From positions 1-64,000 of IMG/VR virus record IMGVR_UViG_3300046665_000548: a stretch of DNA of 64,000 nt. One strand, 5' to 3'. This document shows positions 1,194 through 47,846 of this stretch, one piece after another. Numbering within the stretch: position 1 is the stretch's first letter; each line of letters begins with the position of its first letter. Below the pieces are notes generated by a model, which ran no database searches, was not told the DNA's origin, and saw only the letters and a program-made list of their open reading frames with translations. Both the position numbers and the translations under genes were made by a program.

Positions 1194-1625
1194 ATGTCGC
1201 TGTAGCTGCACCATCACATTGATCTAACGGCTCTCACCACTGAGGCCGAGAACGACCCCTATCGCTTGTACGCCATTGTGCGCGGCGATCTGGAAATGTC
1301 GCCGGGCAAGCTCGCGGCTCAAGCCGGACATGCCTATTGCGACGCGCTCCATGCAGCGCTCACTCGCGATCCCTCTATCCAACAGAAGTATTTCAGGGCG
1401 AATAGCTCGGGGACCAAGGTCACCCTAGTCGCGTCCTCCGAGTTCCGACTCCTTCGCGCATATCAAGACGCGCAGAAGGCCGGATTGCCGTGCGCTCTGA
1501 TCATCGATCAGCATCACGTGCACCCTCCACACTTCGACGGCTCACCCATCATCACGGCGCTCGGGATCGGTCCTGCGCGGCGAGCGGATGTGCACGCCAT
1601 CACGAAGCGGTTCTCCACTCTTTAA
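1194..1625 (+). CDS. pth2: Peptidyl-tRNA hydrolase, Pth2 family, with in-frame UAG at codon 4
   Basis: YAIVRGDLEMSPGKLAAQAGHA, KVTL and TALGIGP motifs; SD AAGGA precedes ATG 1194, in frame with ORF 1266-1625 through TAG 1203-1205. Confidence 0.85.
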
Positions 1626-1943: not shown

Positions 1944-2020
1944 GTAGGGGTAGCTGAATGGTTCAAGCACCGGTCCGGAAGGAACGGAGTATGTAGGTTC
2001 GAATCCTACCCCCTACGCCA
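1944..2020 (+). ncRNA. tRNA-like RNA lacking a canonical anticodon loop
   Basis: Acceptor GTAGGGG/CCCCTAC-G-CCA; T arm GTAGG-TTCGAAT-CCTAC; anticodon arm CCGGTCC-GGAA-GGAACGG with no U33. Confidence 0.8.
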
Positions 2021-2267: not shown

Positions 2268-2840
2268 ATGAGCGCGATGGGAATGCACCCGAAATTCACC
2301 GACAAAGAAGGCTATACCAACTGGATGGCCTCTTGGAAATCCATGTACAAGCAACTTTCTAGCGAGATCACCAAAGACAAGCTTTTCCTGAAGAAAGCTT
2401 TCCGAGAATCGTCTGTCGTTTCCGAAGAGACCAGGAAGCGTCAGAGCAATCTCGTACATAAGCGCGTAATGGCGCACAAGATGATGACCATGCACAAGGA
2501 TGCAAAGGAACGCTGGAAGCGTATCGTCGGCATGCAGAAAGAGATCGATGATCAGATGGCAAGCTTCCCGCTGACGCTGGAGGCCCCGAGCATCGATTTC
2601 CATTTCAACAAGGGCAGCATCGAATTCCCGTTTCTCCCTTCGTGGATCATTAAGTGTAAGGGCAAGACGTTCTACATGAACCATGTCGATTTTGATTGCG
2701 TTGGAACGACTCGCGAGACGCCTGAGCATCCGTCCACCAAAGGTTCGATGCGTTTCCGGCAGTGTTCGCTCGAACTGAGGGCAGATGGATCAGCATCGAT
2801 CAAAAAGAGGCAGCCAGTCGAATTGGCGAAAGTCGCTTGA
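2268..2840 (+). CDS. Two-domain hypothetical protein
   Basis: AAGGAG SD; N-terminus resembles 1652-1930; C-terminal FHFNK...W...RETPEHPSTKGS beta domain. Confidence 0.8.
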   Translation: MSAMGMHPKFTDKEGYTNWMASWKSMYKQLSSEITKDKLFLKKAFRESSVVSEETRKRQSNLVHKRVMAHKMMTMHKDAKERWKRIVGMQKEIDDQMASFPLTLEAPSIDFHFNKGSIEFPFLPSWIIKCKGKTFYMNHVDFDCVGTTRETPEHPSTKGSMRFRQCSLELRADGSASIKKRQPVELAKVA

Positions 2841-2864
2841 CAAAAATCGAATCTGTGTTAGTTT
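2837..2864 (+). promoter_or_regulatory. Sigma70-type promoter
   Basis: TTGACA-N16-TAGTTT. Confidence 0.6.
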
Positions 2865-2882
2865 TGAGGCTCCACGGAGGTC

Positions 2883-3878
2883 TTGAACATGTCGATCCAC
2901 CCCGGCGTAGAACTCGGTACCTATACTGAAGAACTGCGCCGGGTCCCCGTTCACCTGGATCACAAGCCTCATTTGACTTTCGATCTCGCCAAGGCTCTTG
3001 GGCCACAGGCAGTTGCCGAAGCCTCCGAATATTCAGGCGAGACGCTGATCGACCGGGTTCGTAACCTGGGGATGGAAGATTTCGCGAACCTGACGGTCGA
3101 TCAACTCGCCAAGGTTCGTCGCGCCTCGTTCATCATGATGGGTTCCTCTGTAGAGGATGCATTTCGGAACGAGCCGCGTCTTCGCATCATCCAAAAGATT
3201 GAAAACAGCATGTGGCGATGGGGCGTCTCCCGCTCCGGCTGGAATGAGGTCGTTGATGCCTATGATGGCATTCGTCGCTTCACTTTTCATCCCGACTTTG
3301 AGGTCCGGCTCGATCACACCACTGGTCACAACGAGCGCGGCCATAGCCAGTATAGCCGTACGTTTCTCGACGGCGTGTTCGGCTTCCTGATCTATTATCG
3401 AGGCGAGCATGTGATGACGCTCGGCTTTTCGGTCATGAGCAAGCGCCGTCTGCTGATCCAGCAGGTGCAATTGAAGAAGCGTCGCGGAAATCGATGGTTG
3501 TTTAAGCTGTCGAGCAATTACGTGGAGTTCGCTCTTTCTCGCTTCCAGGAAAGCTTTCCGCGTCATCGCCTCTACCTGATCGACGGCGAAGACAACATTC
3601 GTACGAGTCTCAACTCGTATAGTTCTGGTTTGAAGGATGCGGAAAGCCAATTGGAACGCGCGACCGCATCCCTCAAGAAGGCTGCGGGCCAGGACCGAAC
3701 GTACGATTTACGTTCGATTAATCGCGCACTCGATGACAAGCTTTTCTTCAAGGAAAAGATTGAACACGTTCGTGAACAAGTTGGCCGCGTGACTGCGATC
3801 TACGCCAACACTGGCCGATATACTCGCGGCAAGACGTTGGTCGTCAATCGCCTAAAGCATTACGCGCTGGCGGCTTGA
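2883..3878 (+). CDS. Hypothetical protein
   Basis: 331-aa ORF with GGAGG SD (start may be ATG 2889). Confidence 0.8.
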   Translation: MNMSIHPGVELGTYTEELRRVPVHLDHKPHLTFDLAKALGPQAVAEASEYSGETLIDRVRNLGMEDFANLTVDQLAKVRRASFIMMGSSVEDAFRNEPRLRIIQKIENSMWRWGVSRSGWNEVVDAYDGIRRFTFHPDFEVRLDHTTGHNERGHSQYSRTFLDGVFGFLIYYRGEHVMTLGFSVMSKRRLLIQQVQLKKRRGNRWLFKLSSNYVEFALSRFQESFPRHRLYLIDGEDNIRTSLNSYSSGLKDAESQLERATASLKKAAGQDRTYDLRSINRALDDKLFFKEKIEHVREQVGRVTAIYANTGRYTRGKTLVVNRLKHYALAA

Positions 3879-3909: not shown

Positions 3910-4080
3910 ATGAAGATTTACATTCTCACCGCGCATAAGGCTGATCCGAATGGCGGCGAGGGCACTACAGAGGTTATGAATTTCGGCTGGACCGATAAGG
4001 CAATAGCGGAAGCCTATAAGGACCAGCATGAAGTCTATTATGACACTCAATTTGAGGTACACGAAATCGATGTGATATAG
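3910..4080 (+). CDS. Small hypothetical protein (56 aa, absent from ORF track)
   Basis: MKIYILTAHKADPNGGEG...FEVHEIDVI, TAG stop; TTGACA at 3875. Confidence 0.65.
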   Translation: MKIYILTAHKADPNGGEGTTEVMNFGWTDKAIAEAYKDQHEVYYDTQFEVHEIDVI

Positions 4081-4090
4081 AACGTCTCTT

Positions 4091-4178
4091 GGGGATGTAG
4101 CTCAGCGGTAGAGCGCCGGTCTCTAAAACCGGGGCGGCCAAAAGCCCGGCGCGGGTTCGAAGCCCGCCATTCCCACCA
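4091..4178 (+). tRNA. Amber suppressor tRNA (anticodon CUA), long variable arm, G4:U69, A73
   Basis: GGGGATG/CATTCCC-A-CCA; anticodon arm CCGGT-CTCTAAA-ACCGG; T arm GCGGG-TTCGAAG-CCCGC. Confidence 0.9.
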
Positions 4179-4179
4179 A

Positions 4180-4256
4180 GCTCCCTTAGCTCAGTTGGTT
4201 AGAGCACTGGACTCTAAATCCGGGGGTCGTCGGTTCGAGCCCGACAGGGAGCGCCA
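4180..4256 (+). tRNA. Amber suppressor tRNA (anticodon CUA), short variable arm, G73
   Basis: GCTCCCT/AGGGAGC-G-CCA; anticodon arm CTGGA-CTCTAAA-TCCGG; T arm GTCGG-TTCGAGC-CCGAC. Confidence 0.9.
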
Positions 4257-4260
4257 GTTA

Positions 4261-4292
4261 GAAAGCCGGGGGAAACCCCGGCTTTCTTTTTC
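4261..4292 (+). terminator. Intrinsic terminator after tRNA pair
   Basis: GAAAGCCGGGG-GAAA-CCCCGGCTTTC plus T tract. Confidence 0.85.
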
Positions 4293-4296
4293 TTCT

Positions 4297-4776
4297 TTAC
4301 ATTACTTCCGCGACGACGCGGCCGACACCACGACCGGTCAGACCGATAGCGCTGGCTGCGCCCTTGGACAGGTCGAGCACGCGACCTTTGATGAATGGGC
4401 CGCGATCATTGACCGTGACGACGACGCTGCGGTCACCGTGGGTGACACGTAGCTTGGTGCCGAACGGCAGCGAACGGTGCGCAGCGGTCATGGCGTTCTG
4501 ATTGAAGCGAGCGCCCGAAGCGGTCTTGTTACCGGCTTCATTGCCGTAATAGGACGCGACGCCAGAAAAGGTGCGTCCGCTTCCAGTCGTCACGGGCGCG
4601 GCGGTTGCGCGAAACGCGTGGTCGAAAAACGACAGGATGGATGGAGTGGTATCTGGCGTCGGCTTGGCGACGCGCTGAGCATGATGCCGATGATGGTGAG
4701 ATTTGGCCGAGGCTGTATCAGCAATCGTGCCGGTCATTAGAAGAGCGAGAGTAGCAACAGTGATAATGGGTTTCAC
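4297..4776 (-). CDS. rlpA: RlpA-family (DPBB) lytic transglycosylase with signal peptide
   Basis: GVASYYG, TASG, TAAHRSLPFGT, VNDRGPF, LDLSKGAA; GTG 4776 after AAGGA. Confidence 0.9.
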   Translation of the reverse strand: MKPIITVATLALLMTGTIADTASAKSHHHRHHAQRVAKPTPDTTPSILSFFDHAFRATAAPVTTGSGRTFSGVASYYGNEAGNKTASGARFNQNAMTAAHRSLPFGTKLRVTHGDRSVVVTVNDRGPFIKGRVLDLSKGAASAIGLTGRGVGRVVAEVM

Positions 4777-4896
4777 GTAATTTCCTTTTGAACATTTAAC
4801 GGAGACCGTTCTACCAAACAATTAGGCGAGAACAAGGACATTAAATGGTTCCGCATATGGCCAATTGGCAACATAAACTTCGTGAAATAACCTACC

Positions 4897-4902
4897 TAAA
4901 TA
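4897..4902 (+). promoter_or_regulatory. T4-like late promoter core
   Basis: cTAAATA 5 nt before ATG 4908. Confidence 0.65.
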
Positions 4903-4907
4903 GGGCT

Positions 4908-5141
4908 ATGACGATAAGCACAGTAGCCCTCATGGAAGCCCAAATAGAATTGGACGATCTCAATCTTGTTGGAATGTTTGTGGATGACGCGGTTGCGATC
5001 CTCCGAGAGACATACAAAAACTTTGACATCAAGGTCGCAGAGCCTAGCGCCAAAGCCAGAGTTGGTGTCATCGATAACACGACAATCTGGGTTTGGATTT
5101 CCTCCGAATCGTATCGAGTGACGGCGCTCGTCCATCAGTAA
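4908..5141 (+). CDS. Small late protein
   Basis: Follows late promoter; N-terminal ALMEA. Confidence 0.65.
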   Translation: MTISTVALMEAQIELDDLNLVGMFVDDAVAILRETYKNFDIKVAEPSAKARVGVIDNTTIWVWISSESYRVTALVHQ

Positions 5142-5147
5142 AGCATC

Positions 5148-5153
5148 TAAATA
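5148..5153 (+). promoter_or_regulatory. T4-like late promoter core
   Basis: cTAAATA 5 nt before ATG 5159. Confidence 0.7.
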
Positions 5154-5158
5154 GACGT

Positions 5159-6004
5159 ATGATGACATTCGTACGCCTAATGGAGCTTGCTGGCCAGCCC
5201 ATTCTCCTTGAACGCCTCACGCCTTCTCAGGCGAAGGCTATTTTTGTTCAGCATGGTGCGCCGGAAACGGCTTTCTCGTCACCAGAAGCGCTCAAAGCGG
5301 CGTGGAAAAAACTCATTATCCAGCATCACCCAGATCGCGGCGGCAGTCCTGGCGTAGCGCAGGAGGTCAACGCGGCCTTCGACGTGCTCAAATCAACGCC
5401 TGTGTCTTCGTCTGGATCAAGTCAAGATTGGCCTGACTACAGCAAGGGCTCGTACGGCCGATCTAGCCAGGAAGATAGTGATCCATATCCGGTATGGGCT
5501 CAAGCGGGATGGTCTGGTGGTGCGCGCGAATCCGGCCGTATCAGCCGTAACGATTATCGCGACATGAATTTCTTCAAGAAGAAGATGTGGGAATTGAGCG
5601 GCCAATCGAAAGAAGAATGGACAATCACTGCATTCGACGGCAGCTTTTTCCGCAATTCTCTGACTGTTTATGGTTCGCCCAAAATTTTCAAAGACATGGC
5701 CGAAGCAATGGTCATGTGGAATTCTAAGGGTGGAAATTCTTATCCGACCCGCGCCGTGTTCGCGTCTCGTCGTCGTTCAAAGAAGATGTACGTGATCTAC
5801 TGTGATGGAAAGTTCATGAGCTTTGATCCGCCCGCCCTCGCTCACGACTCGATGAATGACAATCCAAGTAACGATCAGAGCTTCATGCGACAAATGCCTG
5901 AGATGCTGGATCGGATCATGGCGCAGCGTCAACAGTCGAGAAATTCACGAGCCGAAGCCGAAGATCGCGAATGGCAAGGTCGTACTCGGAACGGAGACAA
6001 TTAA
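5159..6004 (+). CDS. J-domain-containing late protein
   Basis: LKAAWKKLIIQHHPDRGG...QEVNAAFDVL. Confidence 0.8.
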   Translation: MMTFVRLMELAGQPILLERLTPSQAKAIFVQHGAPETAFSSPEALKAAWKKLIIQHHPDRGGSPGVAQEVNAAFDVLKSTPVSSSGSSQDWPDYSKGSYGRSSQEDSDPYPVWAQAGWSGGARESGRISRNDYRDMNFFKKKMWELSGQSKEEWTITAFDGSFFRNSLTVYGSPKIFKDMAEAMVMWNSKGGNSYPTRAVFASRRRSKKMYVIYCDGKFMSFDPPALAHDSMNDNPSNDQSFMRQMPEMLDRIMAQRQQSRNSRAEAEDREWQGRTRNGDN

Positions 6005-6712
6005 GTGCGCTACCACGAAATTATCGAAATGGCTCCGTCTCCTGAAGTGAAAGCGATGCCGCTTTATCACGGTACCAAAACTGAGGAGGCCGCTCGAAAT
6101 ATCCTAGCCAATGGAATTCAGCCTGGAGCCCTTACTCAGGGTAGAGGACATCTCGCTCCGGTTGCGGGCAAGGTCTATCTTACCCCAAGTATCGAGTATG
6201 CGACTATCTATGCGCTCGGTGGCGTCTGGATGACGCACGCGATGCGACCTGAATTGCTAAAGGGAAGCCAGTTCGGTTACGTGTTTGTTGTCGATGGTAA
6301 TGCCTTAACTGACATTCAGCCGGATGAAGACTCAGTAGGAGAATTCATCGGCAAGCATTCGGAACGCAAAAGAAACCCAATCACTGGTCGCTACATCGGA
6401 TGGGACTTTCGATCAGATGGCGTCGATGATCAAGCGAAACGAATGGTTTATCACAACATCAAACATTCGATGACGCCGCGCCAATATGAAGCGTCTTGCG
6501 AAGGGTTCATCGCGGCCCAAGCTGCTGGCGGCAAACGGGCTCTAAAGCGATTGTCAAATGAAGATAAGGCCAATCTCGTCAAGTGGGGCGCTCATATCGC
6601 CCATGACGGTGCGATCCATCCAGTTGCGTGTTGGAAGATCGACAAGATGCGATCCGCAGAGATAGCGAAGGACGCGTCCAATTTCTTTGATATAGCTGAA
6701 CGCGTCCTCTAA
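6005..6712 (+). CDS. Putative ADP-ribosyltransferase-fold protein
   Basis: LYHGT...NILANGI...VYLT...ATIYA; N-terminal MRYHEIIE. Confidence 0.6.
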   Translation: MRYHEIIEMAPSPEVKAMPLYHGTKTEEAARNILANGIQPGALTQGRGHLAPVAGKVYLTPSIEYATIYALGGVWMTHAMRPELLKGSQFGYVFVVDGNALTDIQPDEDSVGEFIGKHSERKRNPITGRYIGWDFRSDGVDDQAKRMVYHNIKHSMTPRQYEASCEGFIAAQAAGGKRALKRLSNEDKANLVKWGAHIAHDGAIHPVACWKIDKMRSAEIAKDASNFFDIAERVL

Positions 6713-6717
6713 ACCTG

Positions 6718-7227
6718 TTAGCGGCAGCCCTTGTTCGAGTAGGCAGTATGACTGTCGAACTTGGCAATCGGGCGAAGCGTTGCGAAGAAAACCTTCGAAT
6801 TAGCTGAAACCCCAACGTTGTCGGTGCGCTTGTAGTAGTGAGCGCACTTCATCTTAGCAGGAAGCGCAACCTTACCCGTGTAAACCTCTTCGGCAACCTG
6901 CGTCGCTACGGTCCAAGCCTTGGCGTCACGGATTGGCTTGCCGCCACCCGCCCACTGGGTCCAAGAAAACTGCTTAGGCTGCCATACGGTCTTGCAAACA
7001 GTGTTGCCCCATTCGCTTTGAGCCAGAGTGCGGTTGACCGTAATCAGAGCGATCAGCTTCTGCGCATTAACCGATTCGCCGCGACCTTCATGGTACACGT
7101 TTTGCGCGAGACATTCCTTCTCACGAGATTGAGTGAACTTGGCGTGACCGGCCATGGTCGCGAGAGGCAGCACGATTGCTGCGGTCAGGAAGGTAGAAAT
7201 CTTCGAAATGAGCTTTTTTGAAAACAC
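6718..7227 (-). CDS. SleB-like cell wall hydrolase (Hydrolase_2) with signal peptide
   Basis: CLAQNVYHEGRGE, VNR, TVCKTVWQPKQFSWT. Confidence 0.9.
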   Translation of the reverse strand: MFSKKLISKISTFLTAAIVLPLATMAGHAKFTQSREKECLAQNVYHEGRGESVNAQKLIALITVNRTLAQSEWGNTVCKTVWQPKQFSWTQWAGGGKPIRDAKAWTVATQVAEEVYTGKVALPAKMKCAHYYKRTDNVGVSANSKVFFATLRPIAKFDSHTAYSNKGCR

Positions 7228-7376
7228 TCTGTTCCCCTATCGTTGCCGCGCTTCGTGCGCTTGGAGACAACTTAGCAGGGGCAGGTTAAACAAACGTTGC
7301 CAGGATAGGACAAGACTAGCGATGGTTAATGCATGGAAAATGCTTGCTATATGGTCGGTTCGTGGTATGATTAGCC

Positions 7377-7844
7377 ATGCAACTTTTTGTCGATTCTGAT
7401 GGGGTCTTTTACGACTTCACCCAACATGTAATTGATCTGTTCGGTATTCATCCCGATCAGTTCTCTGGCGGTCCGAACGCGATGTGGGAAACCATCAACG
7501 CGAACGACACCTTTTGGCAGACCATGCCTTTGATGCCAGACGCTCTCCTGCTTTGGGAGGCCATCAAACCGGCTCGCCCAATCGTGCTCACTGGGTGTCA
7601 TCGCGACAACTATGACAGCATCGTTACGCACAAGGAAAAGCGGTGGCTGGAGGATTTTAGTCAGTCCAGCATCATCACGTGCTTGTCCAAAAACAAGGCA
7701 ATGCACATGGAGAAGCCTGGAGACATCTTGGTGGACGATACCTATCGTATCATCAAGAAGTGGGAGGCTGCTGGTGGTCGCGGTGTTCTGTTCAAGAACG
7801 CGTCCCAGGCTATCGCTGACTTGAAGACCCTCGGGGTTATCTGA
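7377..7844 (+). CDS. HAD-family 5'(3')-deoxyribonucleotidase
   Basis: FVDSDGVFYDF, LTG, ILVDD; TATGAT 5 nt upstream of ATG. Confidence 0.85.
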   Translation: MQLFVDSDGVFYDFTQHVIDLFGIHPDQFSGGPNAMWETINANDTFWQTMPLMPDALLLWEAIKPARPIVLTGCHRDNYDSIVTHKEKRWLEDFSQSSIITCLSKNKAMHMEKPGDILVDDTYRIIKKWEAAGGRGVLFKNASQAIADLKTLGVI

Positions 7845-7847
7845 TCG

Positions 7848-8066
7848 ATGGCTGACGACATGCAGACGCACGTCGCCAAAACGATCTGCTGGGCTGCCGC
7901 GACTGACCTTCGTGAGAGGGACGGTTGCGGCATCTGCTATGAGAACGGTGGCGAATGCAACATGTGGCCGCATTTCATGCGAGAAGCCGATCTCGCTATC
8001 AAAGCGGTTCGCGAATATGCTATGTTGACCCCGAGGAAGAAGCCGAGATTGAACTCGGAACGCTAA
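7848..8066 (+). CDS. Cys-rich hypothetical protein
   Basis: Directly follows the HAD gene. Confidence 0.55.
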   Translation: MADDMQTHVAKTICWAAATDLRERDGCGICYENGGECNMWPHFMREADLAIKAVREYAMLTPRKKPRLNSER

Positions 8067-8069
8067 ATA
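8064..8069 (+). promoter_or_regulatory. T4-like late promoter core
   Basis: cTAAATA upstream of 8098. Confidence 0.65.
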
Positions 8070-8097
8070 CACGGTATTTTTCGTGTAAAGGTGGCAA

Positions 8098-9657
8098 ATG
8101 ACAAAATCTCCTCGTGAAACTCTCTCCGGCATCCGTGGCTGGATGAGCATCATCAACGAAGCGATTGATCCCGATCAGGCAACGGTGGATCAAGCTGCCG
8201 CAGACGCTGTTCTTGAAGACACACCACAAGCAGCTTTCGGTGACGACGGAGGTTCTACAAGTTCGACAACTACGTCAACTCCACAGCAAGCTTTCGGAGA
8301 ACCAGCAGATACTCCGCAAGCAGCGTTTGGCGAACAGGGCGACACTCCGCAGGCAGCTTTCGGGGAGTCGAAATCATTTCGCGATTACCTCGCGTTGGTT
8401 GAAGGCGATGTAGCAGGTGGTGATCAGCGTAAAGTTGATTCTAAGACCTCGCGAGACGATGACACTCCTGGAAAAGACGAGCCCGTTCTTCCTGGCGTGA
8501 TCGAGAATGCTGAGAATCATCAGAAACACGACCGTGCGCTTGGTGAATATAGCATTCGCGGATGGATGAACGTCATCAGCGAAGCAACTATCTCGGAAGA
8601 TGATGGTGATACTGTTACATCCGGTGATGGCCCAACCGGCGAAACCACCGCAACAGTAGACTCAACTCCATCTAGTAGTACAATCAGTTCTGGCGATGGC
8701 CCAACTGGAGAAACTACTGCAACTGTAGATACAACTCCAACCGCGTCTACCGCGTCCACTGGTGGAGATTATGCTGCCGCTTCCGATGCCGGTAACGGAA
8801 ATAGCTCTGTAGCAGATGCTGGCGCGGCTTCCGACGCAGGTAACGGAAATGGTTCGGTTGATCCGACGCCCGGTGGATCGACTCCTACGGCAGCGTCTCC
8901 CTTCGCATCTGGAACATCGGCTTACGCCAGTCATGGAGTAACCGGCGCTACCCCGGACAATCCTTCTACCATGACTGGTGGGTCTCCGTTCACATCCGGA
9001 ACGTCGGCATATAACAGTTATGGCGCAACGGGCGCAGCGCCAACAGCAGGAGCCGATACAACAGGATCGATTTCTAAGCCTGCCGCTGCGGCTCCCGCCG
9101 CTGGCGCGGGCGGTGAGCGAACTTACACTGTTCAGAAGGGCGACACCTTGTCGGGTATCGCTAAGGCTCAGACCGGTGACGGAAGCCGCTCTAGCTACAT
9201 GAAGATGGCTGCCGATAGCGGGATCAAGAACCCAGACATGATTCAGCCGGGTCAGCAAATTAAGATTGGCGGCGGTTCGGCTGCCGCCCCTGCTGCTCAG
9301 GCGGCTCCTCGCGCGGCGGCTCCAGCAGCAGCGGCCCCAGCGGCCCCAGCGGCGGCTCCTCAGGCGGCAGCCTCGGGAACCGGTGGAGTTGGATCGGATT
9401 CGCGTTATGGTGGCCAGAACAGCGTCGCAAGTGCTCCATCTGGAACTGGCGGTGTCGGTTCGGATTCCCGCTACGGCGGCCAAAATACTCCTGCTCCTGG
9501 CGGGGAAGGCGCTCGTGTTTCCGACGCCGCAAATCGCGGTCGCGCGCCCTCTACGACGGGCAGTACCGGAGCACCGGCAAGCGCCGCACCTGCGCCCGCT
9601 GCTCCGACAGGCGGCGCAAGCGTTCGAGATGCGGCAAATCGCTGGCGTCGCGCATAA
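8098..9657 (+). CDS. LysM-domain, low-complexity repeat virion protein
   Basis: YTVQKGDTLSGIAK...GIKNPDMIQPGQQIKI; several internal repeats. Confidence 0.85.
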   Translation: MTKSPRETLSGIRGWMSIINEAIDPDQATVDQAAADAVLEDTPQAAFGDDGGSTSSTTTSTPQQAFGEPADTPQAAFGEQGDTPQAAFGESKSFRDYLALVEGDVAGGDQRKVDSKTSRDDDTPGKDEPVLPGVIENAENHQKHDRALGEYSIRGWMNVISEATISEDDGDTVTSGDGPTGETTATVDSTPSSSTISSGDGPTGETTATVDTTPTASTASTGGDYAAASDAGNGNSSVADAGAASDAGNGNGSVDPTPGGSTPTAASPFASGTSAYASHGVTGATPDNPSTMTGGSPFTSGTSAYNSYGATGAAPTAGADTTGSISKPAAAAPAAGAGGERTYTVQKGDTLSGIAKAQTGDGSRSSYMKMAADSGIKNPDMIQPGQQIKIGGGSAAAPAAQAAPRAAAPAAAAPAAPAAAPQAAASGTGGVGSDSRYGGQNSVASAPSGTGGVGSDSRYGGQNTPAPGGEGARVSDAANRGRAPSTTGSTGAPASAAPAPAAPTGGASVRDAANRWRRA

Positions 9658-13711: not shown

Positions 13712-14514
13712 TGACCAGTTGGCTCATTTGGGCAGCGGTGATCTTCGGCGTCACGTCGATTGTCGTCAATCGCGTGCTGCACTCCCCCGTGGGCCTCATT
13801 GGTGCGACCTCATATAGTGATGCGATCCGTCAGGGTCGCATCATTGAGGCCGGAATGCGGTTCATCTTTCAGTTCATCCAGGGATTGGTATGGTTCTTCC
13901 AGAATGTCCTTTACTGGCCTTGGAGCGTCGGCCGTCGCTTTGTTCTATGGGCTTGTAAGCGTTATTACGCACTGTGGCGCTGGGTCGTTATCGGCAAGGA
14001 CGGCTATAGTTCGAAGCCGCGCGCCGGTATGATGGTTACTGCTACGGTTCTTGCATCGGCATTCGCGATCCCTTTCACGATTTCCATGGCTGAGCTTGCT
14101 GGCGACACCTTCATGTATACCGTCTTTGGCGAGGAAGAGGTCGTATTCTTGCACAACACTCACCTCAGTGAGAAAGGCAAGACACATACTATTGACGGCA
14201 GCTTCACGTATCCAAGCTCTCCCGATACGTCTTTGTACTACGTTGTGGAAGACGACGTATTCAGCAACATCTGGAGCATCGCCAAGCATGGTCGGCTATT
14301 TTACCCGGATAGTGTAGCAAGCTCTGTGCCTCCGGTGCCGAGCCGATGTAAAATCGTGAGCTTCGGTGTGCGTCAAAAGTTCTTTGTGCAGCGCTTGCAA
14401 ATCTATCCACAGATGCTCTATGCGACCTGTTGCCCAGACCAGCATGTTTGTCCGTCTGTTGGCGACATCAAACAGTCGGCCATCTTGCAGCAACCAGTCG
14501 CGAAGAATGATTAG
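13711..14514 (+). CDS. Membrane protein
   Basis: Hydrophobic segments; coupled to clpB stop. Confidence 0.75.
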   Translation: MTSWLIWAAVIFGVTSIVVNRVLHSPVGLIGATSYSDAIRQGRIIEAGMRFIFQFIQGLVWFFQNVLYWPWSVGRRFVLWACKRYYALWRWVVIGKDGYSSKPRAGMMVTATVLASAFAIPFTISMAELAGDTFMYTVFGEEEVVFLHNTHLSEKGKTHTIDGSFTYPSSPDTSLYYVVEDDVFSNIWSIAKHGRLFYPDSVASSVPPVPSRCKIVSFGVRQKFFVQRLQIYPQMLYATCCPDQHVCPSVGDIKQSAILQQPVAKND

Positions 14515-15136
14515 TCTCGTACAGTGTGGTGCTGCCAGAGCTTTGCTTGGCTGGACTCATAATGATCTGGCCGCGAAGACCAATGTGCCGGTATCCGTAA
14601 TTGTGGACTTCGAAAGTGGTACGAGTACGCCACCGAGAGAGACTTTAGTCGAACTCCGGTTAGCGTTCACTCTCGAAGGTTGTGTGTTTCGCGACGGCGG
14701 GGTTACGCATCCGCCGCTACGGGACCGCCTTGAACAGAACGAGCGCAAGAACCGCAAAGATGAAAAAGCGCAGCAGAACCTCGCGGACATGAGCAACGAT
14801 GAACTGATGACGCTCCGCGTGACGCTCAATACTGAGCTAGCCGTTGTAAAACGCCAACAGAGCGGAATCATCTCTCGCATCACGACTATCAGCAACGAAT
14901 TGCGTCGTCGGAAGAGCCCCGGCGACACTGTTGATGTGAGCGAACACGCGGTCGTGCGGTATCTGGAACGCCTTCACGGCGTCAACGTGCGTGAAATTCG
15001 TCGCAAGATTAGAGATGCAATTCCGGCTGACGCTGTTCGGGGAGACAAGTTCACAGTAGACGGCATTACCTATGTGATTTCCCACAACGGTCGTGTTACG
15101 ACTCTCTATGAGGACGAATCCTCCGCCGAAGTTTAG
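14507..15136 (+). CDS. XRE-family HTH protein with C-terminal HAxxRxxER domain
   Basis: QCGAARALLGWTHNDLA...IVDFESG; VSEHAVVRYLERLHG. Confidence 0.75.
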   Translation: MISLVQCGAARALLGWTHNDLAAKTNVPVSVIVDFESGTSTPPRETLVELRLAFTLEGCVFRDGGVTHPPLRDRLEQNERKNRKDEKAQQNLADMSNDELMTLRVTLNTELAVVKRQQSGIISRITTISNELRRRKSPGDTVDVSEHAVVRYLERLHGVNVREIRRKIRDAIPADAVRGDKFTVDGITYVISHNGRVTTLYEDESSAEV

Positions 15137-15145
15137 GAATGTCTC

Positions 15146-15958
15146 GTGTATTGGTTGCTGCAACATAATCTGTTTCATGAAAAAGGAATGCGAGACCTGA
15201 TCGCATTTCTGGAACGCATGGGCATCCCGCACTCCGAACACAAGATCATTCCGTTCGTGGGAGAGCTTGAGCCTGACATCGATATTGAAGGCGATGTCAT
15301 TTGTATCGGATCATACTCGATGCGCCATCTTGCCAAGCGCAAAGGATGGGTGCCGGGTGTGTTCGATATGGACGGCATCACATACGAGGACTGTATCAAA
15401 AAGTGGGGCACGGATATGCTCAACTACGATGCGGTTATTGTGCCTCTGTACGACGCTCTAGAGACCTTCGACAGGGTAAATGAAGACGGGTTGATCTTCA
15501 TGCGTCCCATCGCTGACTCCAAAGATTTTGCTGGCGCAGTATTCGAGCGAGGACCGCTCGAATATTTGTGGAAGGGAATCGATTCCTTGGGGGACGAGGC
15601 CGATCCTGCGGGGCTCCGACGAGACACCCTCGTGATGATGTGCGCACCGAAGAACATTGCCCGTGAATATCGCTTCTGGATCGTAGACGGGCGAGTTGTG
15701 ACGGGATCACAATACAAGCTTGGTAGCCGCGTCCTGTACTCAAGTGACATAGACCCGGACGTGAAAACGTTCGCAGTCAGCCGGGTGGCTTCGATCTCAG
15801 TAGATCGTTGGAACCCGTTGAGGGCCTTTGTGCTTGACGTGGCGCTGATGCGGGACGGCTCCAAGAAAGTTGTCGAACTGAACACTTTCAATGCGGCCGG
15901 TCTCTACGCAGCCGATGTAGCAAAAATCGTAGAAGCGATTGAGGGCATGAGATTCTGA
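15146..15958 (+). CDS. ATP-grasp protein (DUF4343/R2K-like)
   Basis: FMRPIADSKDFAG, EYRFWIVDGRVVTGSQY, FVLDVA, VVELN...GLY. Confidence 0.85.
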   Translation: MYWLLQHNLFHEKGMRDLIAFLERMGIPHSEHKIIPFVGELEPDIDIEGDVICIGSYSMRHLAKRKGWVPGVFDMDGITYEDCIKKWGTDMLNYDAVIVPLYDALETFDRVNEDGLIFMRPIADSKDFAGAVFERGPLEYLWKGIDSLGDEADPAGLRRDTLVMMCAPKNIAREYRFWIVDGRVVTGSQYKLGSRVLYSSDIDPDVKTFAVSRVASISVDRWNPLRAFVLDVALMRDGSKKVVELNTFNAAGLYAADVAKIVEAIEGMRF

Positions 15959-45348: not shown

Positions 45349-46025
45349 ACTACTTCTCCGTTCAAAACGTTTTGTACCCACCAAGCGATCAGTTCATTAT
45401 CACCAACCTCTGCTGAGATCAGGCCGACCTCTGGATCGACAGCAAAACCGGCCGGTTGGTCGAGCGAATTGGACGCACGCACGAGATATTCGACAACTTC
45501 ATCATCGAAGCCGAAACGATGCTTAGAGATAAGCTCCTGCACAGGCTTGATGGTGTCTCGCGTTACCGGAACAACCCAAACGCGATGCTGAGAATGGAAC
45601 CAGTTGTACTTTTCGATCATGCCGGTGCCCTTCGGTCGAAGACGTTTGATGTCGTTTTTGATGACATCGTTCATCTTAAATCTGAAGGCTAAGCAGTTGT
45701 CGCCTATGTACCGAACCTCGCGAGGAACACTCGCGCTCGTATACGGAGTATGCCGATATGTTGGGAACTCGATGAGGTTCCTGATCTTTTGTTCTTCGAC
45801 CAGTTCAGCGACAACCATTTTGCGCTCAAAACGCTTGAGCATTTTGAGGACAATCTTGGACTGCTCGGTTGAAAGCGGTTTGTCTTTTCGGATGTAGGCA
45901 ACGACGTTCGTGACGAATCGAAGGTCCCAATTCTGTTCAGTCGAAACCGCATCTACAAATTGAATTCCATAATCGTCAACCTTCAGCAATTTCGCGAGAA
46001 GTTCGAGGCCATCTTCAACCTTCAT
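45345..46025 (-). CDS. Phage protein of unknown function
   Basis: AAGGA SD; PLSTEQ; WFHSQHRVWVVP. Confidence 0.75.
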   Translation of the reverse strand: MKVEDGLELLAKLLKVDDYGIQFVDAVSTEQNWDLRFVTNVVAYIRKDKPLSTEQSKIVLKMLKRFERKMVVAELVEEQKIRNLIEFPTYRHTPYTSASVPREVRYIGDNCLAFRFKMNDVIKNDIKRLRPKGTGMIEKYNWFHSQHRVWVVPVTRDTIKPVQELISKHRFGFDDEVVEYLVRASNSLDQPAGFAVDPEVGLISAEVGDNELIAWWVQNVLNGEVV

Positions 46026-46463: not shown

Positions 46464-47846
46464 GTGATCAAAATTCACAATTTCCGAGCCGGTTTCGCCA
46501 CTAACTCGTCTTCTTCGCATAGCGTGGTGCTGATCCCCGACGACTTGATAGGACAAGTGGCCTCTATCGACGGAGACCATGGCGATTATGGTTGGAATTA
46601 TTTCCGCCTCACGTCACAGGAAGAGAAGCTTCGGTATCTCGCGGCGCAGTGCGTTGCTGGCGGATGGGGTCAGTATAGCGATGATATTCGTTCAGCGATC
46701 CTGGCCGAGGTGCCGGAGGTCGAGTTCGACAGTGGCGATTATGTTGACCATCAGTCGGTGATGACAATTGGCAGCTTCAACCCCACATTGCTGAAGGGGC
46801 TGATTCGCCTTTTCAGGTCCCCAAAGGTCGTCGTACTCGGAGGCAATGATAACTCAGACTCTACCATCAATCACATTGATGGTCAGGTGGAGGAACCGCT
46901 GACGACAGCGTTGGCGAACACCTACGAATGTAAAGTCAGATTTGATAACGGCACTGCTGTTATCATGAACAAATATACGGGCGATAAGGCGAGAATTTCG
47001 CTGGACGACCGGGACTATACTAAAGCCACCTATCCGGAATTGGTCGATTTGAAGATCACCGATTGGTGCGATGTGGGTTGCCAGTTCTGCTACCAGTCTT
47101 CAACGAAGAACGGTAAGCACGCCGACATGGCCGTTATCAGTTCCGTGCTGGAAATGCTCGCAAAGATGGAGGTCTTCGAGATCGCCATCGGCGGCGGCGA
47201 GCCTACCTCGCATCCTCATTTTCTTGAAATTTTGGCCAAATGCTCTCGCGTCGGAATCAAGCCGAATTTCACTACCCTTTCTCGTAAATGGCTTAGTGAT
47301 CCGCTCATGGTTGAAGCGGTGCAGACCGATGTCGGCGGTATTGGCGTTTCTTGCTTGAGCGCTAAGGGTCTCGCGTTGGTCGATGAAATCAAAAAAGCAG
47401 TTACCACCGCATACGGCGGCGGACCGAAAGTCATGGCACAACATGTGCTGGGCAGCGTCCCGCTGTGGGTGACGGCCGAATTCCTAAATGCGGCCTTTGA
47501 AGCGAAACACGCCGTTTTGCTTCTCGGCTACAAAGATGTCGGGTTCGGCAAGGATTACGAGCGCCACGACGGCGGCGATGTGCCATTGTTTCTCAAGACC
47601 GGCGTCCAGAAGTTCGACGGAAAAGCCAGCCTCAGCGTCGATACGGCGCTTGTGGATCGGTATCCTGAATTGGTGAGCGCACTCGGTGCAGTCGAGGCCC
47701 AGGTGTCTAGCCCAGAGGGCAAGTTCTCCTGCTATGTTGACGCCGTAGAAGGTCTGATCGGACCATCCTCGTATGTCCAGGCATCCGAGATGGAAAAGCT
47801 GCCGACTTCCTTGGCGGACTTTGTGAAGGTTTTTGCGAGCTTCTGA
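46464..47846 (+). CDS. Radical SAM protein fused to N-terminal TNSSS-motif domain
   Basis: RAGFATNSSSSHS; CDVGCQFC; GGGEPTSHP. Confidence 0.9.
   Translation: MIKIHNFRAGFATNSSSSHSVVLIPDDLIGQVASIDGDHGDYGWNYFRLTSQEEKLRYLAAQCVAGGWGQYSDDIRSAILAEVPEVEFDSGDYVDHQSVMTIGSFNPTLLKGLIRLFRSPKVVVLGGNDNSDSTINHIDGQVEEPLTTALANTYECKVRFDNGTAVIMNKYTGDKARISLDDRDYTKATYPELVDLKITDWCDVGCQFCYQSSTKNGKHADMAVISSVLEMLAKMEVFEIAIGGGEPTSHPHFLEILAKCSRVGIKPNFTTLSRKWLSDPLMVEAVQTDVGGIGVSCLSAKGLALVDEIKKAVTTAYGGGPKVMAQHVLGSVPLWVTAEFLNAAFEAKHAVLLLGYKDVGFGKDYERHDGGDVPLFLKTGVQKFDGKASLSVDTALVDRYPELVSALGAVEAQVSSPEGKFSCYVDAVEGLIGPSSYVQASEMEKLPTSLADFVKVFASF

Follow-up and report, generated by a model that had tools for sequence, protein, structure and literature searches.

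The 64,000 nucleotides analysed here (the window), positions 1 to 64,000 of the virus record IMGVR_UViG_3300046665_000548, carry two amber-suppressor tRNA genes of different build in direct tandem, which we call sup1 and, downstream of it, sup2 (Table 1). The window is the start of a single virus contig of 607,744 bp with a G+C content of 51.7%. As judged from its sequence, this phage uses the standard genetic code, with no detectable in-frame UAG, and we consider it probable, though by no means assured, that sup1 and sup2 are two non-redundant amber suppressors acting in trans on natural UAG stops. Suppressor tRNAs in phages are commonly interpreted as recoding tools; a conserved pair in standard-code megaphages makes testable the question of what use such tRNAs are to a phage with nothing to recode. 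No description of two amber suppressors of different structure conserved as a tandem was found in the literature searched, the coverage of which was incomplete.

Structure and conservation of the tandem

ARAGORN identified four tRNA genes in the window, two of which, both on the plus strand, have the anticodon CUA. Each of the two has the 7-bp acceptor stem and 5-bp T stem of an elongator tRNA, scores above the Rfam RF00005 gathering score of 29 bits and encodes its CCA end. Their anticodon loops are those expected of amber suppressors, namely the 7-nt sequence CUCUAAA with U33 and a purine at position 37. In sup1, the acceptor stem includes G4:U69, the D arm is of the class-I type (4-bp stem, 7-nt loop), the variable region comprises 18 nt (4133–4150) with a stem of about 3 bp, and the discriminator base is A73 (4175). 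In sup2, the acceptor stem is perfect, the variable loop has 5 nt, the discriminator is G73 (4253), and the 9-nt D loop, AGUUGGUUA, has U at position 20 and hence no A20. A sequence-only reading of the window had already reported the identical CTCTAAA loops 1 nt apart, the variable region, D stem, G4:U69 and A73 of sup1, and the short variable arm, G73 and missing A20 of sup2, all of which agree with the sequence and the ARAGORN structures. The strong terminator that it placed after the tandem was likewise recovered, with a fold of −24.3 kcal/mol (z = −5.41) that none of 200 shuffles equalled in stability and with a terminator scan in agreement.

To find relatives of the tandem, we searched with the 331-aa protein encoded upstream of it and fetched the contigs of the closest homologues. 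The tandem is kept in L462, a 124-kb JGI contig whose neighbour protein is 66% identical, and in L463/L464, two Logan assemblies in which this protein is 61% identical; L462 and L463 were viewed near the locus only. In all three, an 88-nt CUA tRNA, a single A and a 77-nt CUA tRNA are followed by a convergent DPBB gene. Since the same pair with the same 1-nt spacer recurs in L462 and L463/L464, the arrangement is, on this comparison, not due to chance. In addition, a 3,575-nt contig from run X1 contains a diverged copy of positions 2815–3437 and 4090–4428. Synteny was gone in homologues of the neighbour protein at ≤53% identity, and four distant loci from a metagenome scan had the tRNAs in 0 of 4 cases. 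Within IMG/VR, an exact-pattern search for sup1 gave 0 matches and a search with the 331-aa protein found no relatives.

Across the three lineages of sup1, 100% of the alignment cells at stem positions are paired and six pairs show compensatory changes, located at acceptor positions 4–7 and in the T stem, whereas in slid controls no more than two pairs were compensatory and no more than 50% of cells paired. Invariant throughout are G1–G3:C70–C72 and A73, the D and anticodon arms over their full length, and 17 of the 18 bases of the variable region, while pair 4:69 is G:U, U:A and A:U in the three lineages. For sup2, we compared this genome (G000) with four huge IMG/VR phages of 247–519 kb (G001–G004), whose ClpB-like protein is 55–56% identical to the G000 version and each of which has one sup2-type CUA tRNA; three of them (G001, G002 and G004), which were downloaded in full, have about 40% G+C. 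In this family of five sequences, 12 of 21 pairs are changed on both sides and 91% of cells pair; 0 of 500 shuffles reached the observed score, and slid controls fell far below it. The five agree throughout in G1:C72, the D arm, the loop CUCUAAA and G73-CCA, and when L462 and L463 were added, the anticodon loop and G73 remained invariant. These alignments place both tRNA genes under selection for tRNA structure.

The same data bear on the proposal that sup1 and sup2 are not decoders at all, being instead relics or tRNA-like decoys or primers whose CUA anticodon has no function. The phage has no in-frame UAG in need of decoding, and ‘inactive’ suppressor tRNAs of standard-code phages have been discussed (PMC12386605). 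Against this stand anticodon loops that stay invariant beside covarying stems, in three lineages of sup1 and seven sequences of sup2, together with the encoded CCA, canonical T and D loops and high Rfam scores; moreover, relics would not keep CUA across phages 12 G+C points apart. We regard this proposal as extremely unlikely.

The RNAfold minimum-energy fold of sup1 differs from the cloverleaf (−38.3 kcal/mol, as against −31.9 kcal/mol for the cloverleaf-like centroid). In this alternative, within positions 4115–4150 of the window, the variable region forms base pairs at its 3′ end with the 5′ strand of the anticodon stem; covariation does not discriminate between the two folds because both segments are invariant in the orthologues.

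The promoter scan of the locus found no sigma-70-like promoter directly upstream of sup1, and the two tRNAs probably share a transcript with the open reading frames (ORFs) of the 331-aa protein and of a 56-codon product that precede them. The terminator also borders the convergent DPBB gene at its 3′ end and so probably acts on both strands. A hairpin of other sequence occupies the same place in L463/L464.

UAG as a stop codon in the phage genome

Under the standard code (code 11), ORFs of at least 150 aa span 79% of the genome, and a codon-usage gene model gave a higher summed score with code 11 than with TAG as a sense codon (28977 vs 28825). The 686 modelled genes end in TAA (325), TGA (282) or TAG (79), so that natural UAG stops terminate about 11.5% of phage genes. 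In-frame extensions after TAG were not longer than those that follow TAA or TGA (median lengths 15, 14 and 13 codons across stops; Mann-Whitney p = 0.37), and nearby back-up stops after TAG were not enriched among the modelled genes. Long same-frame ORFs did follow TAG more often in the raw count (0.32 vs 0.16–0.19 for other stops), an excess attributable to antisense shadow ORFs: once these were removed, 29 TAA, 18 TGA and 6 TAG junctions remained, matching stop usage, and in 6 of 6 TAG junctions a start codon lay within five codons. No ORF without a start codon was found after a TAG in the genome.

We also compared peptides read through every stop with the ORFs of G001, G002 and G004. The stop-spanning alignments were antisense to a longer, better-scoring ORF, with a lone exception in which the stop faces a gap and the sequence ahead of it has a non-coding score; no conserved gene interrupted by TAG was found against these three genomes. 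They too use the standard code, TAG terminating 6–10% of their long ORFs. A search of the 607,744-bp genome for a release factor (PCRF domain; RF1/RF2) gave no match, a phage-encoded RF2 being common, if not universal, in code-15 systems. TAG recoding of the phage was rejected by five approaches. Programmed read-through extensions were rejected too, there being neither an excess nor a greater length of extensions after TAG.

These results weigh on the explanation of the tandem as a code-change module, in which the tRNAs would translate phage genes with in-frame UAG (code 15), for instance late or lysis genes. The tRNAs do adjoin a cluster of cell-wall hydrolases (DPBB, Hydrolase_2, LysM), and the raw TAG-junction count would fit; the latter excess disappears without antisense shadows, which leaves TAG at 6 of 53 junctions, and the better gene-model score of code 11, its coverage of the genome, the uninterrupted conserved genes, the start codons of all TAG-following ORFs, the lack of RF1/RF2 and the standard code of the relatives all speak against it. 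We consider this explanation very unlikely. Because the code is standard and neither in-frame UAG nor a release factor was found, the tRNAs do not appear to serve a recoded gene set.

Comparison with known systems leads in the same direction. The likeness to code-15 phages (crAss-like, Lak) and to the Jade ‘code-change module’, which consists of a suppressor tRNA, TrpRS and RF1 upstream of lysis genes, lies in a suppressor tRNA beside lysis-type genes and a TrpRS in the genome; moreover, the long-arm CUA architecture recurs in IMG/VR contigs, some of them apparently TAG-recoded. Unlike in these systems, the present phage has no recoded genes or release factor, and its TrpRS lies 29 kb off and is absent from the sup2-type relatives. 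Standard-code phages with suppressor tRNAs are known (bioRxiv 10.1101/2021.08.26.457843; PMC12386605). Like clade 8 of the Zeta crAss-like phages (PMC12386605) and the standard-code relatives of recoded phages (Borges et al., 10.1101/2021.08.26.457843), this phage keeps a CUA tRNA without in-frame TAG and has TAG as its rarest stop, and the roles proposed are the same: weakening of the host or its defences, put forward for the ‘silent’ suppressors of Zeta crAss-like phages (PMC12386605), and pre-adaptation to recoding or nonsense tolerance (bioRxiv 10.1101/2021.08.26.457843). It differs from them in the fixed tandem of two structurally different CUA tRNAs and in being a 608-kb soil phage of 52% G+C rather than a low-G+C gut phage. 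Back-up stops near TAG-ended genes, reported for Zeta crAss-like phages, are not enriched here.

Some neighbouring genes are linked through a TAG. A helix-turn-helix (HTH)/sigma-70 region-4-like protein (28210–28998, plus strand) ends in TAG, in frame and six codons before an AlaRS-like fragment, to which UAG suppression at 28998 would fuse it; an HTH_3 protein (14366–15136, ending in TAG) is followed in frame by an R2K ATP-grasp protein (15146–15958). The number of such TAG-linked pairs is not above chance.

Identity elements and charging of sup1 and sup2

The body of sup1 appears to be of Trp-type origin. Its anticodon arm, CCGGU-CUCUAAA-ACCGG, equals a Trp arm except at position 35, where C is replaced by U, and its nearest whole-body relatives are phage tRNA-Trp(CCA) molecules (73–76% identity) that have a class-I D arm and a long variable arm, the latter starting with GGCGG as in sup1. 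The acceptor stem equals that of the phage's own tRNA-Asp, though it varies among the orthologues. At the acceptor end, the G73 with A1:U72 of bacterial tRNA-Trp and Su7 is absent, its place being taken by invariant G1:C72 and A73. In the phage clade, G73 is accompanied by A1:U72 in the Trp tRNAs (5 of 5) and by U1:A72 in all Gln tRNAs; sup1 therefore lies, by these elements, outside both the Trp and the Gln identity sets of the clade. It resembles E. coli Su7 (supU, tRNA-Trp CUA) in combining a Trp anticodon arm with the C35-to-U change. Su7 reportedly retains A1:U72 and G73 and is charged by both GlnRS and TrpRS, whereas G1:C72, A73 and the 18-nt variable region of sup1 should abolish both identities.

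The 18-nt variable region gives sup1 the long arm of class II tRNAs (Leu, Ser, Tyr); their 3-bp D stem and enlarged D loop are not present in it, whereas the Leu, Ser and Tyr tRNAs of the same phage carry the class-II D arm. With supF-type tRNA-Tyr(CUA), it shares the long variable arm, A73 and G1:C72, and its loop departs from the Tyr loop CUGUAAA solely at position 34. Its D arm, unlike that of supF, consists of a 4-bp stem and a 7-nt loop, and its body is nearer to tRNA-Trp and to compact phage tRNAs. The tRNA-Ala element G3:U70 is absent, pair 3:70 being G:C in 3 of 3 orthologues. In sup2, the end G1:C72 with G73 is one found in these phages in Asp, Ser and some Arg tRNAs. Arg identity needs A20 and C35, and Asp identity needs G34, C36 and C38; sup2 has none of these. 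Two further assignments were tried and set aside. Body similarity placed sup2 nearest to Phe, Asn, Met and Ile tRNAs (75–82%), which reflects a generic compact body and is uninformative as to isotype. The ARAGORN label tRNA-Pyl, which calls for a variable loop of 3 nt, an anticodon stem of 6 bp and a small D loop, does not fit variable regions of 18 and 5 nt, anticodon stems of 5 bp and D loops of 7 and 9 nt, and no PylRS was found in the genome (PylS_Cterm match of 23.9 bits vs a cut-off of 178). Neither tRNA has the 8/4 or 9/3 acceptor/T arrangement of allo-tRNAs (Mukai et al., PMC5389517), both being 7/5.

The sequence-only reading had proposed that different identity elements point to different synthetases and possibly to different amino acids at UAG. 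The two tRNAs do differ at the classical positions, and the differences are kept in three lineages; G4:U69, one of the elements that it named, is not conserved and, because the orthologues have U:A and A:U at this pair, is not an identity element. Its suggestion of the phage AlaRS-like enzyme for sup1 finds no support: the product is a 287-aa fragment that scores 73.3 bits with TIGR00344 against a cut-off of 457. Alanine identity via G4:U69 was accordingly discarded, as the orthologues lack the pair and the AlaRS is fragmentary. For sup2 it had named TrpRS, and a full-length phage TrpRS does exist and is only a candidate for charging the suppressors; relatives with the sup2 type are without it, which makes a host enzyme more likely.

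Other synthetases, encoded outside the window and overlooked by that reading, appear to be better candidates for sup1, namely the phage TyrRS, SerRS and a truncated LeuRS-like protein. The genome encodes full-length TyrRS, SerRS and AspRS beyond the window, as well as a ThrRS shortened at its N terminus; GlnRS was not found in it. Further synthetases are truncated: a 434-aa LeuRS-like core that lacks an editing domain, a 295-aa GluRS catalytic domain that lacks an anticodon-binding domain, a GlyRS-like fragment, and a 201-aa class-II-like fragment adjoining tRNA-His. None of these synthetases was found in G001, G002 and G004. Because these three phages keep the sup2 type without them, sup2 is most likely charged by a host enzyme and not by the phage TrpRS; its product is most likely Gln as a first guess, because E. 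coli identity rules would favour glutaminylation of a compact CUA tRNA that has G73, with Trp second. For sup1, possible chargers are the phage TyrRS and SerRS and, in addition, the truncated LeuRS-like protein. A73, G1:C72, U35 and a long arm are the main bacterial Tyr elements, and A73 and U35 with GGG/CCC also fit Lys; sup1 matches both sets, and our ranked guesses for its product begin with Tyr or Lys, followed by Leu or Ser.

The host enzymes concerned are probably those of a soil alphaproteobacterium. This assignment follows from three observations: Agrobacterium phage Atu_ph07 is the closest isolate (ClpB-like protein 49.6% identical in amino acids), the phage transfer-messenger RNA (tmRNA) is of the permuted, alphaproteobacterial type, and a rhizosphere metagenome is among the only runs containing related sequence. 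No CUA tRNA was found in the main tRNA region of Atu_ph07, the rest of whose genome was not searched exhaustively.

Whether one or two enzymes act on the pair separates the remaining explanations. According to one, the two tRNAs are redundant: both would deliver the same amino acid, likeliest Gln, through a single host enzyme that mainly reads U35, and the tandem would serve dosage. Sup1 and sup2 share the loop CUCUAAA and G10, and the pairs G2:C71 and G3:C70 of sup1 belong to the elements recognized by GlnRS in E. coli. Host-divergent phage codes, in addition, show only TAG-to-Gln, and CUA tRNAs tend toward glutaminylation (bioRxiv 10.1101/2021.08.26.457843). However, two dissimilar bodies, each with its own invariant A73 or G73, have been held in tandem through divergence, whereas dosage by itself would favour copies of one gene; neither tRNA has the weak 1:72 pair of the Gln and Trp tRNAs of these phages, and the host, if an alphaproteobacterium, may lack GlnRS. 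We judge redundancy to be unlikely.

A second alternative holds that a phage synthetase (TyrRS, SerRS, TrpRS or a truncated enzyme) charges sup1 specifically, with the invariant variable region, A73 and the GGG/CCC end as signals, and so opens a route for decoding UAG that does not depend on the host. Among the genomes compared here, sup1 is confined to the lineage of G000, the only examined genome with synthetases; the variable region (17 of 18 bases) and the entire anticodon stem are invariant while other stems vary; and the match to the Tyr elements, the full-length TyrRS and SerRS and one phage tRNA-Ser with A73 are in keeping with the idea. The class-I D arm of sup1, with its 4-bp stem and 7-nt loop, is unlike that of Tyr, Ser and Leu tRNAs, and a variable stem of only about 3 bp also speaks against it; we judge such a private pair to be rather unlikely. 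The tandem, with its Trp-type body that has a long variable arm, an altered discriminator and possibly a matched phage synthetase, offers natural material for genetic-code engineering.

We favour two non-redundant suppressors. The tandem has been kept while the neighbour protein fell to 61–66% identity, which argues that the pair is not redundant and fits different charging enzymes. Under this interpretation, sup1 and sup2 would belong to one transcription unit, a precursor running in from the upstream ORFs and stopping at the hairpin at 4260–4297, from which RNase P and 3′ trimming would release two CCA-ended tRNAs. Both would read UAG through CUA in a canonical 7-nt loop. Sup1 would present a Trp-type body whose acceptor end has been turned into G1–G3:C70–C72 with A73, and sup2 a compact body with G1:C72 and G73; separate enzymes would probably charge them, since the bodies differ at positions that synthetases read. 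Suppression would then occur in trans at natural UAG stops of host and phage messages. Its benefit might lie in perturbing the host or its defences, in a few C-terminally extended proteins, in buffering nonsense mutations in a very large genome, or in pre-adaptation to recoding.

Several points weigh against this interpretation. The locus appeared in no RNA run, the run search yielding DNA contigs only. With about 79 TAG-ended phage genes and no enrichment of back-up stops, efficient suppression would alter the phage's own proteins. One enzyme mainly reading U35 could charge both tRNAs. The coding model is crude (50-codon windows score 0.17 ± 0.10 when coding and −0.18 ± 0.11 off frame) and could overlook in-frame TAGs that lie near the end of a gene or within a short orphan gene, and the homology test is limited to genes common to three distant relatives. 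Finally, the amino-acid ranking applies E. coli identity rules to a host that is probably an alphaproteobacterium.

Genomic surroundings and related tRNAs

The genome contains 57 tRNA genes and one tmRNA, along with marks of huge phages recognized by PHROG/Pfam (a DnaB-type helicase, a virion protein and a ClpB-like ATPase). The tmRNA may deal with ribosomes that have moved past read-through stop codons; G001 and G002 likewise encode a tmRNA.

Table 1. Positions of the tandem, its neighbours and other features of the phage genome. Entries without a prefix refer to the window; prefixed entries refer to whole genomes or contigs.
Feature	Position	Strand	Evidence and remarks
sup1, amber-suppressor tRNA, 88 nt	4091–4178	+	ARAGORN; Rfam RF00005 64.2 bits; anticodon CUA 4123–4125
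One-base spacer (A) between sup1 and sup2	4179	+	Sequence
sup2, amber-suppressor tRNA, 77 nt	4180–4256	+	ARAGORN; Rfam RF00005 68.7 bits; anticodon CUA 4214–4216
Terminator hairpin and T tract	4260–4297		12-bp G+C-rich stem 4260–4287, then T run
PTH2-type (archaeal/eukaryotic-type) peptidyl-tRNA hydrolase	1266–1625	+	Pfam PF01981, 1.3e-21
tRNA with 8-nt anticodon loop CCGGAAGG	1944–2020	+	ARAGORN four-base anticodon GGAA; Rfam 50.7 bits
Hypothetical protein, 331 aa, synteny anchor	2883–3878	+	87 homologues; syntenic in L462, L463, L464
56-codon ORF ending in TAG, 10 nt before sup1	3910–4080	+	Sequence
DPBB (RlpA-like lytic transglycosylase) protein, convergent	4297–4821	−	Pfam PF03330, 1.1e-26; same position in L464
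SleB-like Hydrolase_2	6718–7227	−	Cell-wall cluster
LysM protein	8098–9657		Cell-wall cluster
AlaRS catalytic-domain fragment, 287 aa	29017–29880	+	PF01411 profile 5–130 and 281–317 of 552
TrpRS, full-length, bacterial type	33519–34520	+	PF00579; TIGR00233 298.9 bits vs cut-off 176.75
TyrRS, full-length	G000:455158–456324	−	
SerRS, full-length	G000:168865–170151		
AspRS, full-length	G000:160116–162002		
Truncated synthetase	G000:157481–158785		
Truncated synthetase	G000:212066–212953	−	
Truncated synthetase	G000:590844–591602	−	
Truncated synthetase	G000:236924–237295	−	
Permuted tmRNA	G000:576377–576796		RF04321 102.5 bits, RF01849 65.1 bits; tag ANDNVAVSEYALAA
Long tRNAs with class-I anticodons	G000:137536–137622, 343310–343395		
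Long tRNAs with class-I anticodons	G001:40612–40701, 45937–46025, 46961–47048		
Long tRNAs with class-I anticodons	G004:362145–362231; L466:2183–2270		

Upstream of the tandem, the 331-aa protein has no Pfam or PHROG match, and a Pfam search with the 56-codon ORF gave none either; a 57-aa ORF occupies the equivalent position in L463/L464. The frame of the 56-codon ORF stays open past its TAG (4081–4452), across both tRNAs to a TAG at 4450, probably a chance outcome of the tRNAs and of the DPBB gene on the opposite strand. Downstream, the cell-wall-active gene cluster (4297–9657) that adjoins the tRNAs begins with the DPBB gene and is syntenic in L464.

The same syntenic block contains the PTH2 gene and, just downstream of it, the tRNA with an 8-nt anticodon loop, which has G73 and an encoded CCA and may be a quadruplet or frameshift decoder. 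In the orthologues of this tRNA (L463:3100–3176 and L462:2226–2301), the anticodon arm is invariant and the acceptor stem shows a compensatory change from A3:U70 to G3:C70. The PTH2 gene is syntenic in L462, and G002 and G004 encode homologues of it. A gene for a Tpt1/KptA-like RNA 2′-phosphotransferase is present in this block of L462 and L463, and tRNAs with odd loop sizes occur in the relatives G001 and G004 as well. The PTH2 gene and the 8-nt-loop tRNA, together with the phage's own tmRNA, make suggestive surroundings for a suppressor pair. One could go further and see the PTH2 gene, the 8-nt-loop tRNA and the two suppressors as a cassette for non-standard decoding, with sup1 re-identified, made orthogonal to host TrpRS and GlnRS by its invariant variable region and new A73 end, and charged by a synthetase of the phage. 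UAG would then stand for two residues, one under host control and the other under phage control; we think this distinctly unlikely in both parts.

The architecture of sup1 recurs widely. Long-armed phage tRNA-Trp(CCA) genes of 80–92 nt occur in at least 120 IMG/VR contigs (L342–L461, e.g. L438:1307–1392, L349, L350), keeping G73 with A1 or G1 opposite U72, and many have class-II-like D arms. Long-armed CUA tRNAs of gut phages were found in at least 80 contigs (L101–L180, e.g. L103:4235–4325, L102:1226–1394, L164:340–512), some of which appear TAG-recoded. Most of these CUA tRNAs are built like sup1 (D stem of 4 bp, D loop of 6–8 nt, variable region of 18–25 nt), and two lineages pair a long with a short CUA tRNA 3–4 nt apart. 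Sup1 thus shares with the long-armed Trp tRNAs and the gut CUA tRNAs its anticodon-arm sequence, the long variable region and, often, the class-I D arm. Its acceptor end sets it apart from most of them, in which G73 goes together with U72 facing A1, U1 or G1, or with a mismatch; in most of the CUA tRNAs, U1 or A1, a weak or mismatched 1:72 pair and G73 make up a Gln/Trp-like end. The combination of a class-I body with a long arm, and the breadth of these long-armed Trp and CUA phage tRNAs, were not found described in the literature searched, which was incompletely covered; they point to large, apparently undescribed families.

Most gut CUA tRNAs have a conserved motif in the variable region, CUCUGAAG, to which GGCCAAAAGCC corresponds in sup1. 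The motif equals the anticodon loop of the same tRNAs with A36 replaced by G, which yields a Gln-like CUG loop; the variable loop of L180 is GUCCAAA (Trp-like), and the variable region of sup1 displays CCAAAA, the 3′ part of the Trp anticodon loop. Long variable hairpins with a sense-like anticodon loop (CUG in the gut suppressors, CCA in sup1 and L180) might serve as surrogate synthetase recognition elements. A duplication or mimicry of the anticodon arm by the variable arm is no more than an idea: local alignment gave p = 0.006 in the case of sup1 and 0.02 in those of L180 and L134, which is weak for a comparison of very short sequences with mononucleotide shuffles, and the fold register of the variable arm was inconsistent in the gut family.

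Long variable arms are also present in other tRNAs of 86–90 nt with class-I anticodons (Lys UUU, Asn GUU, Met CAU, Gln CUG, Ile UAU and Cys GCA; Table 1). Some of these have class-II-like bodies, and the ‘Lys UUU’ tRNA of G000 has C73. Separately, CUA tRNAs with full alanine identity (G3:U70, A73 and a D loop of the GGGAGAGC type) occur at L270:334–408, L305:334–408 and L283:1324–1398, in tRNA-rich contigs binned with a Phocaeicola metagenome-assembled genome and an uncultured bacterium. They are candidates for natural amber suppressors that insert Ala; those of L270 and L305 have the 5′ acceptor strand GGGGAUG, as in sup1.

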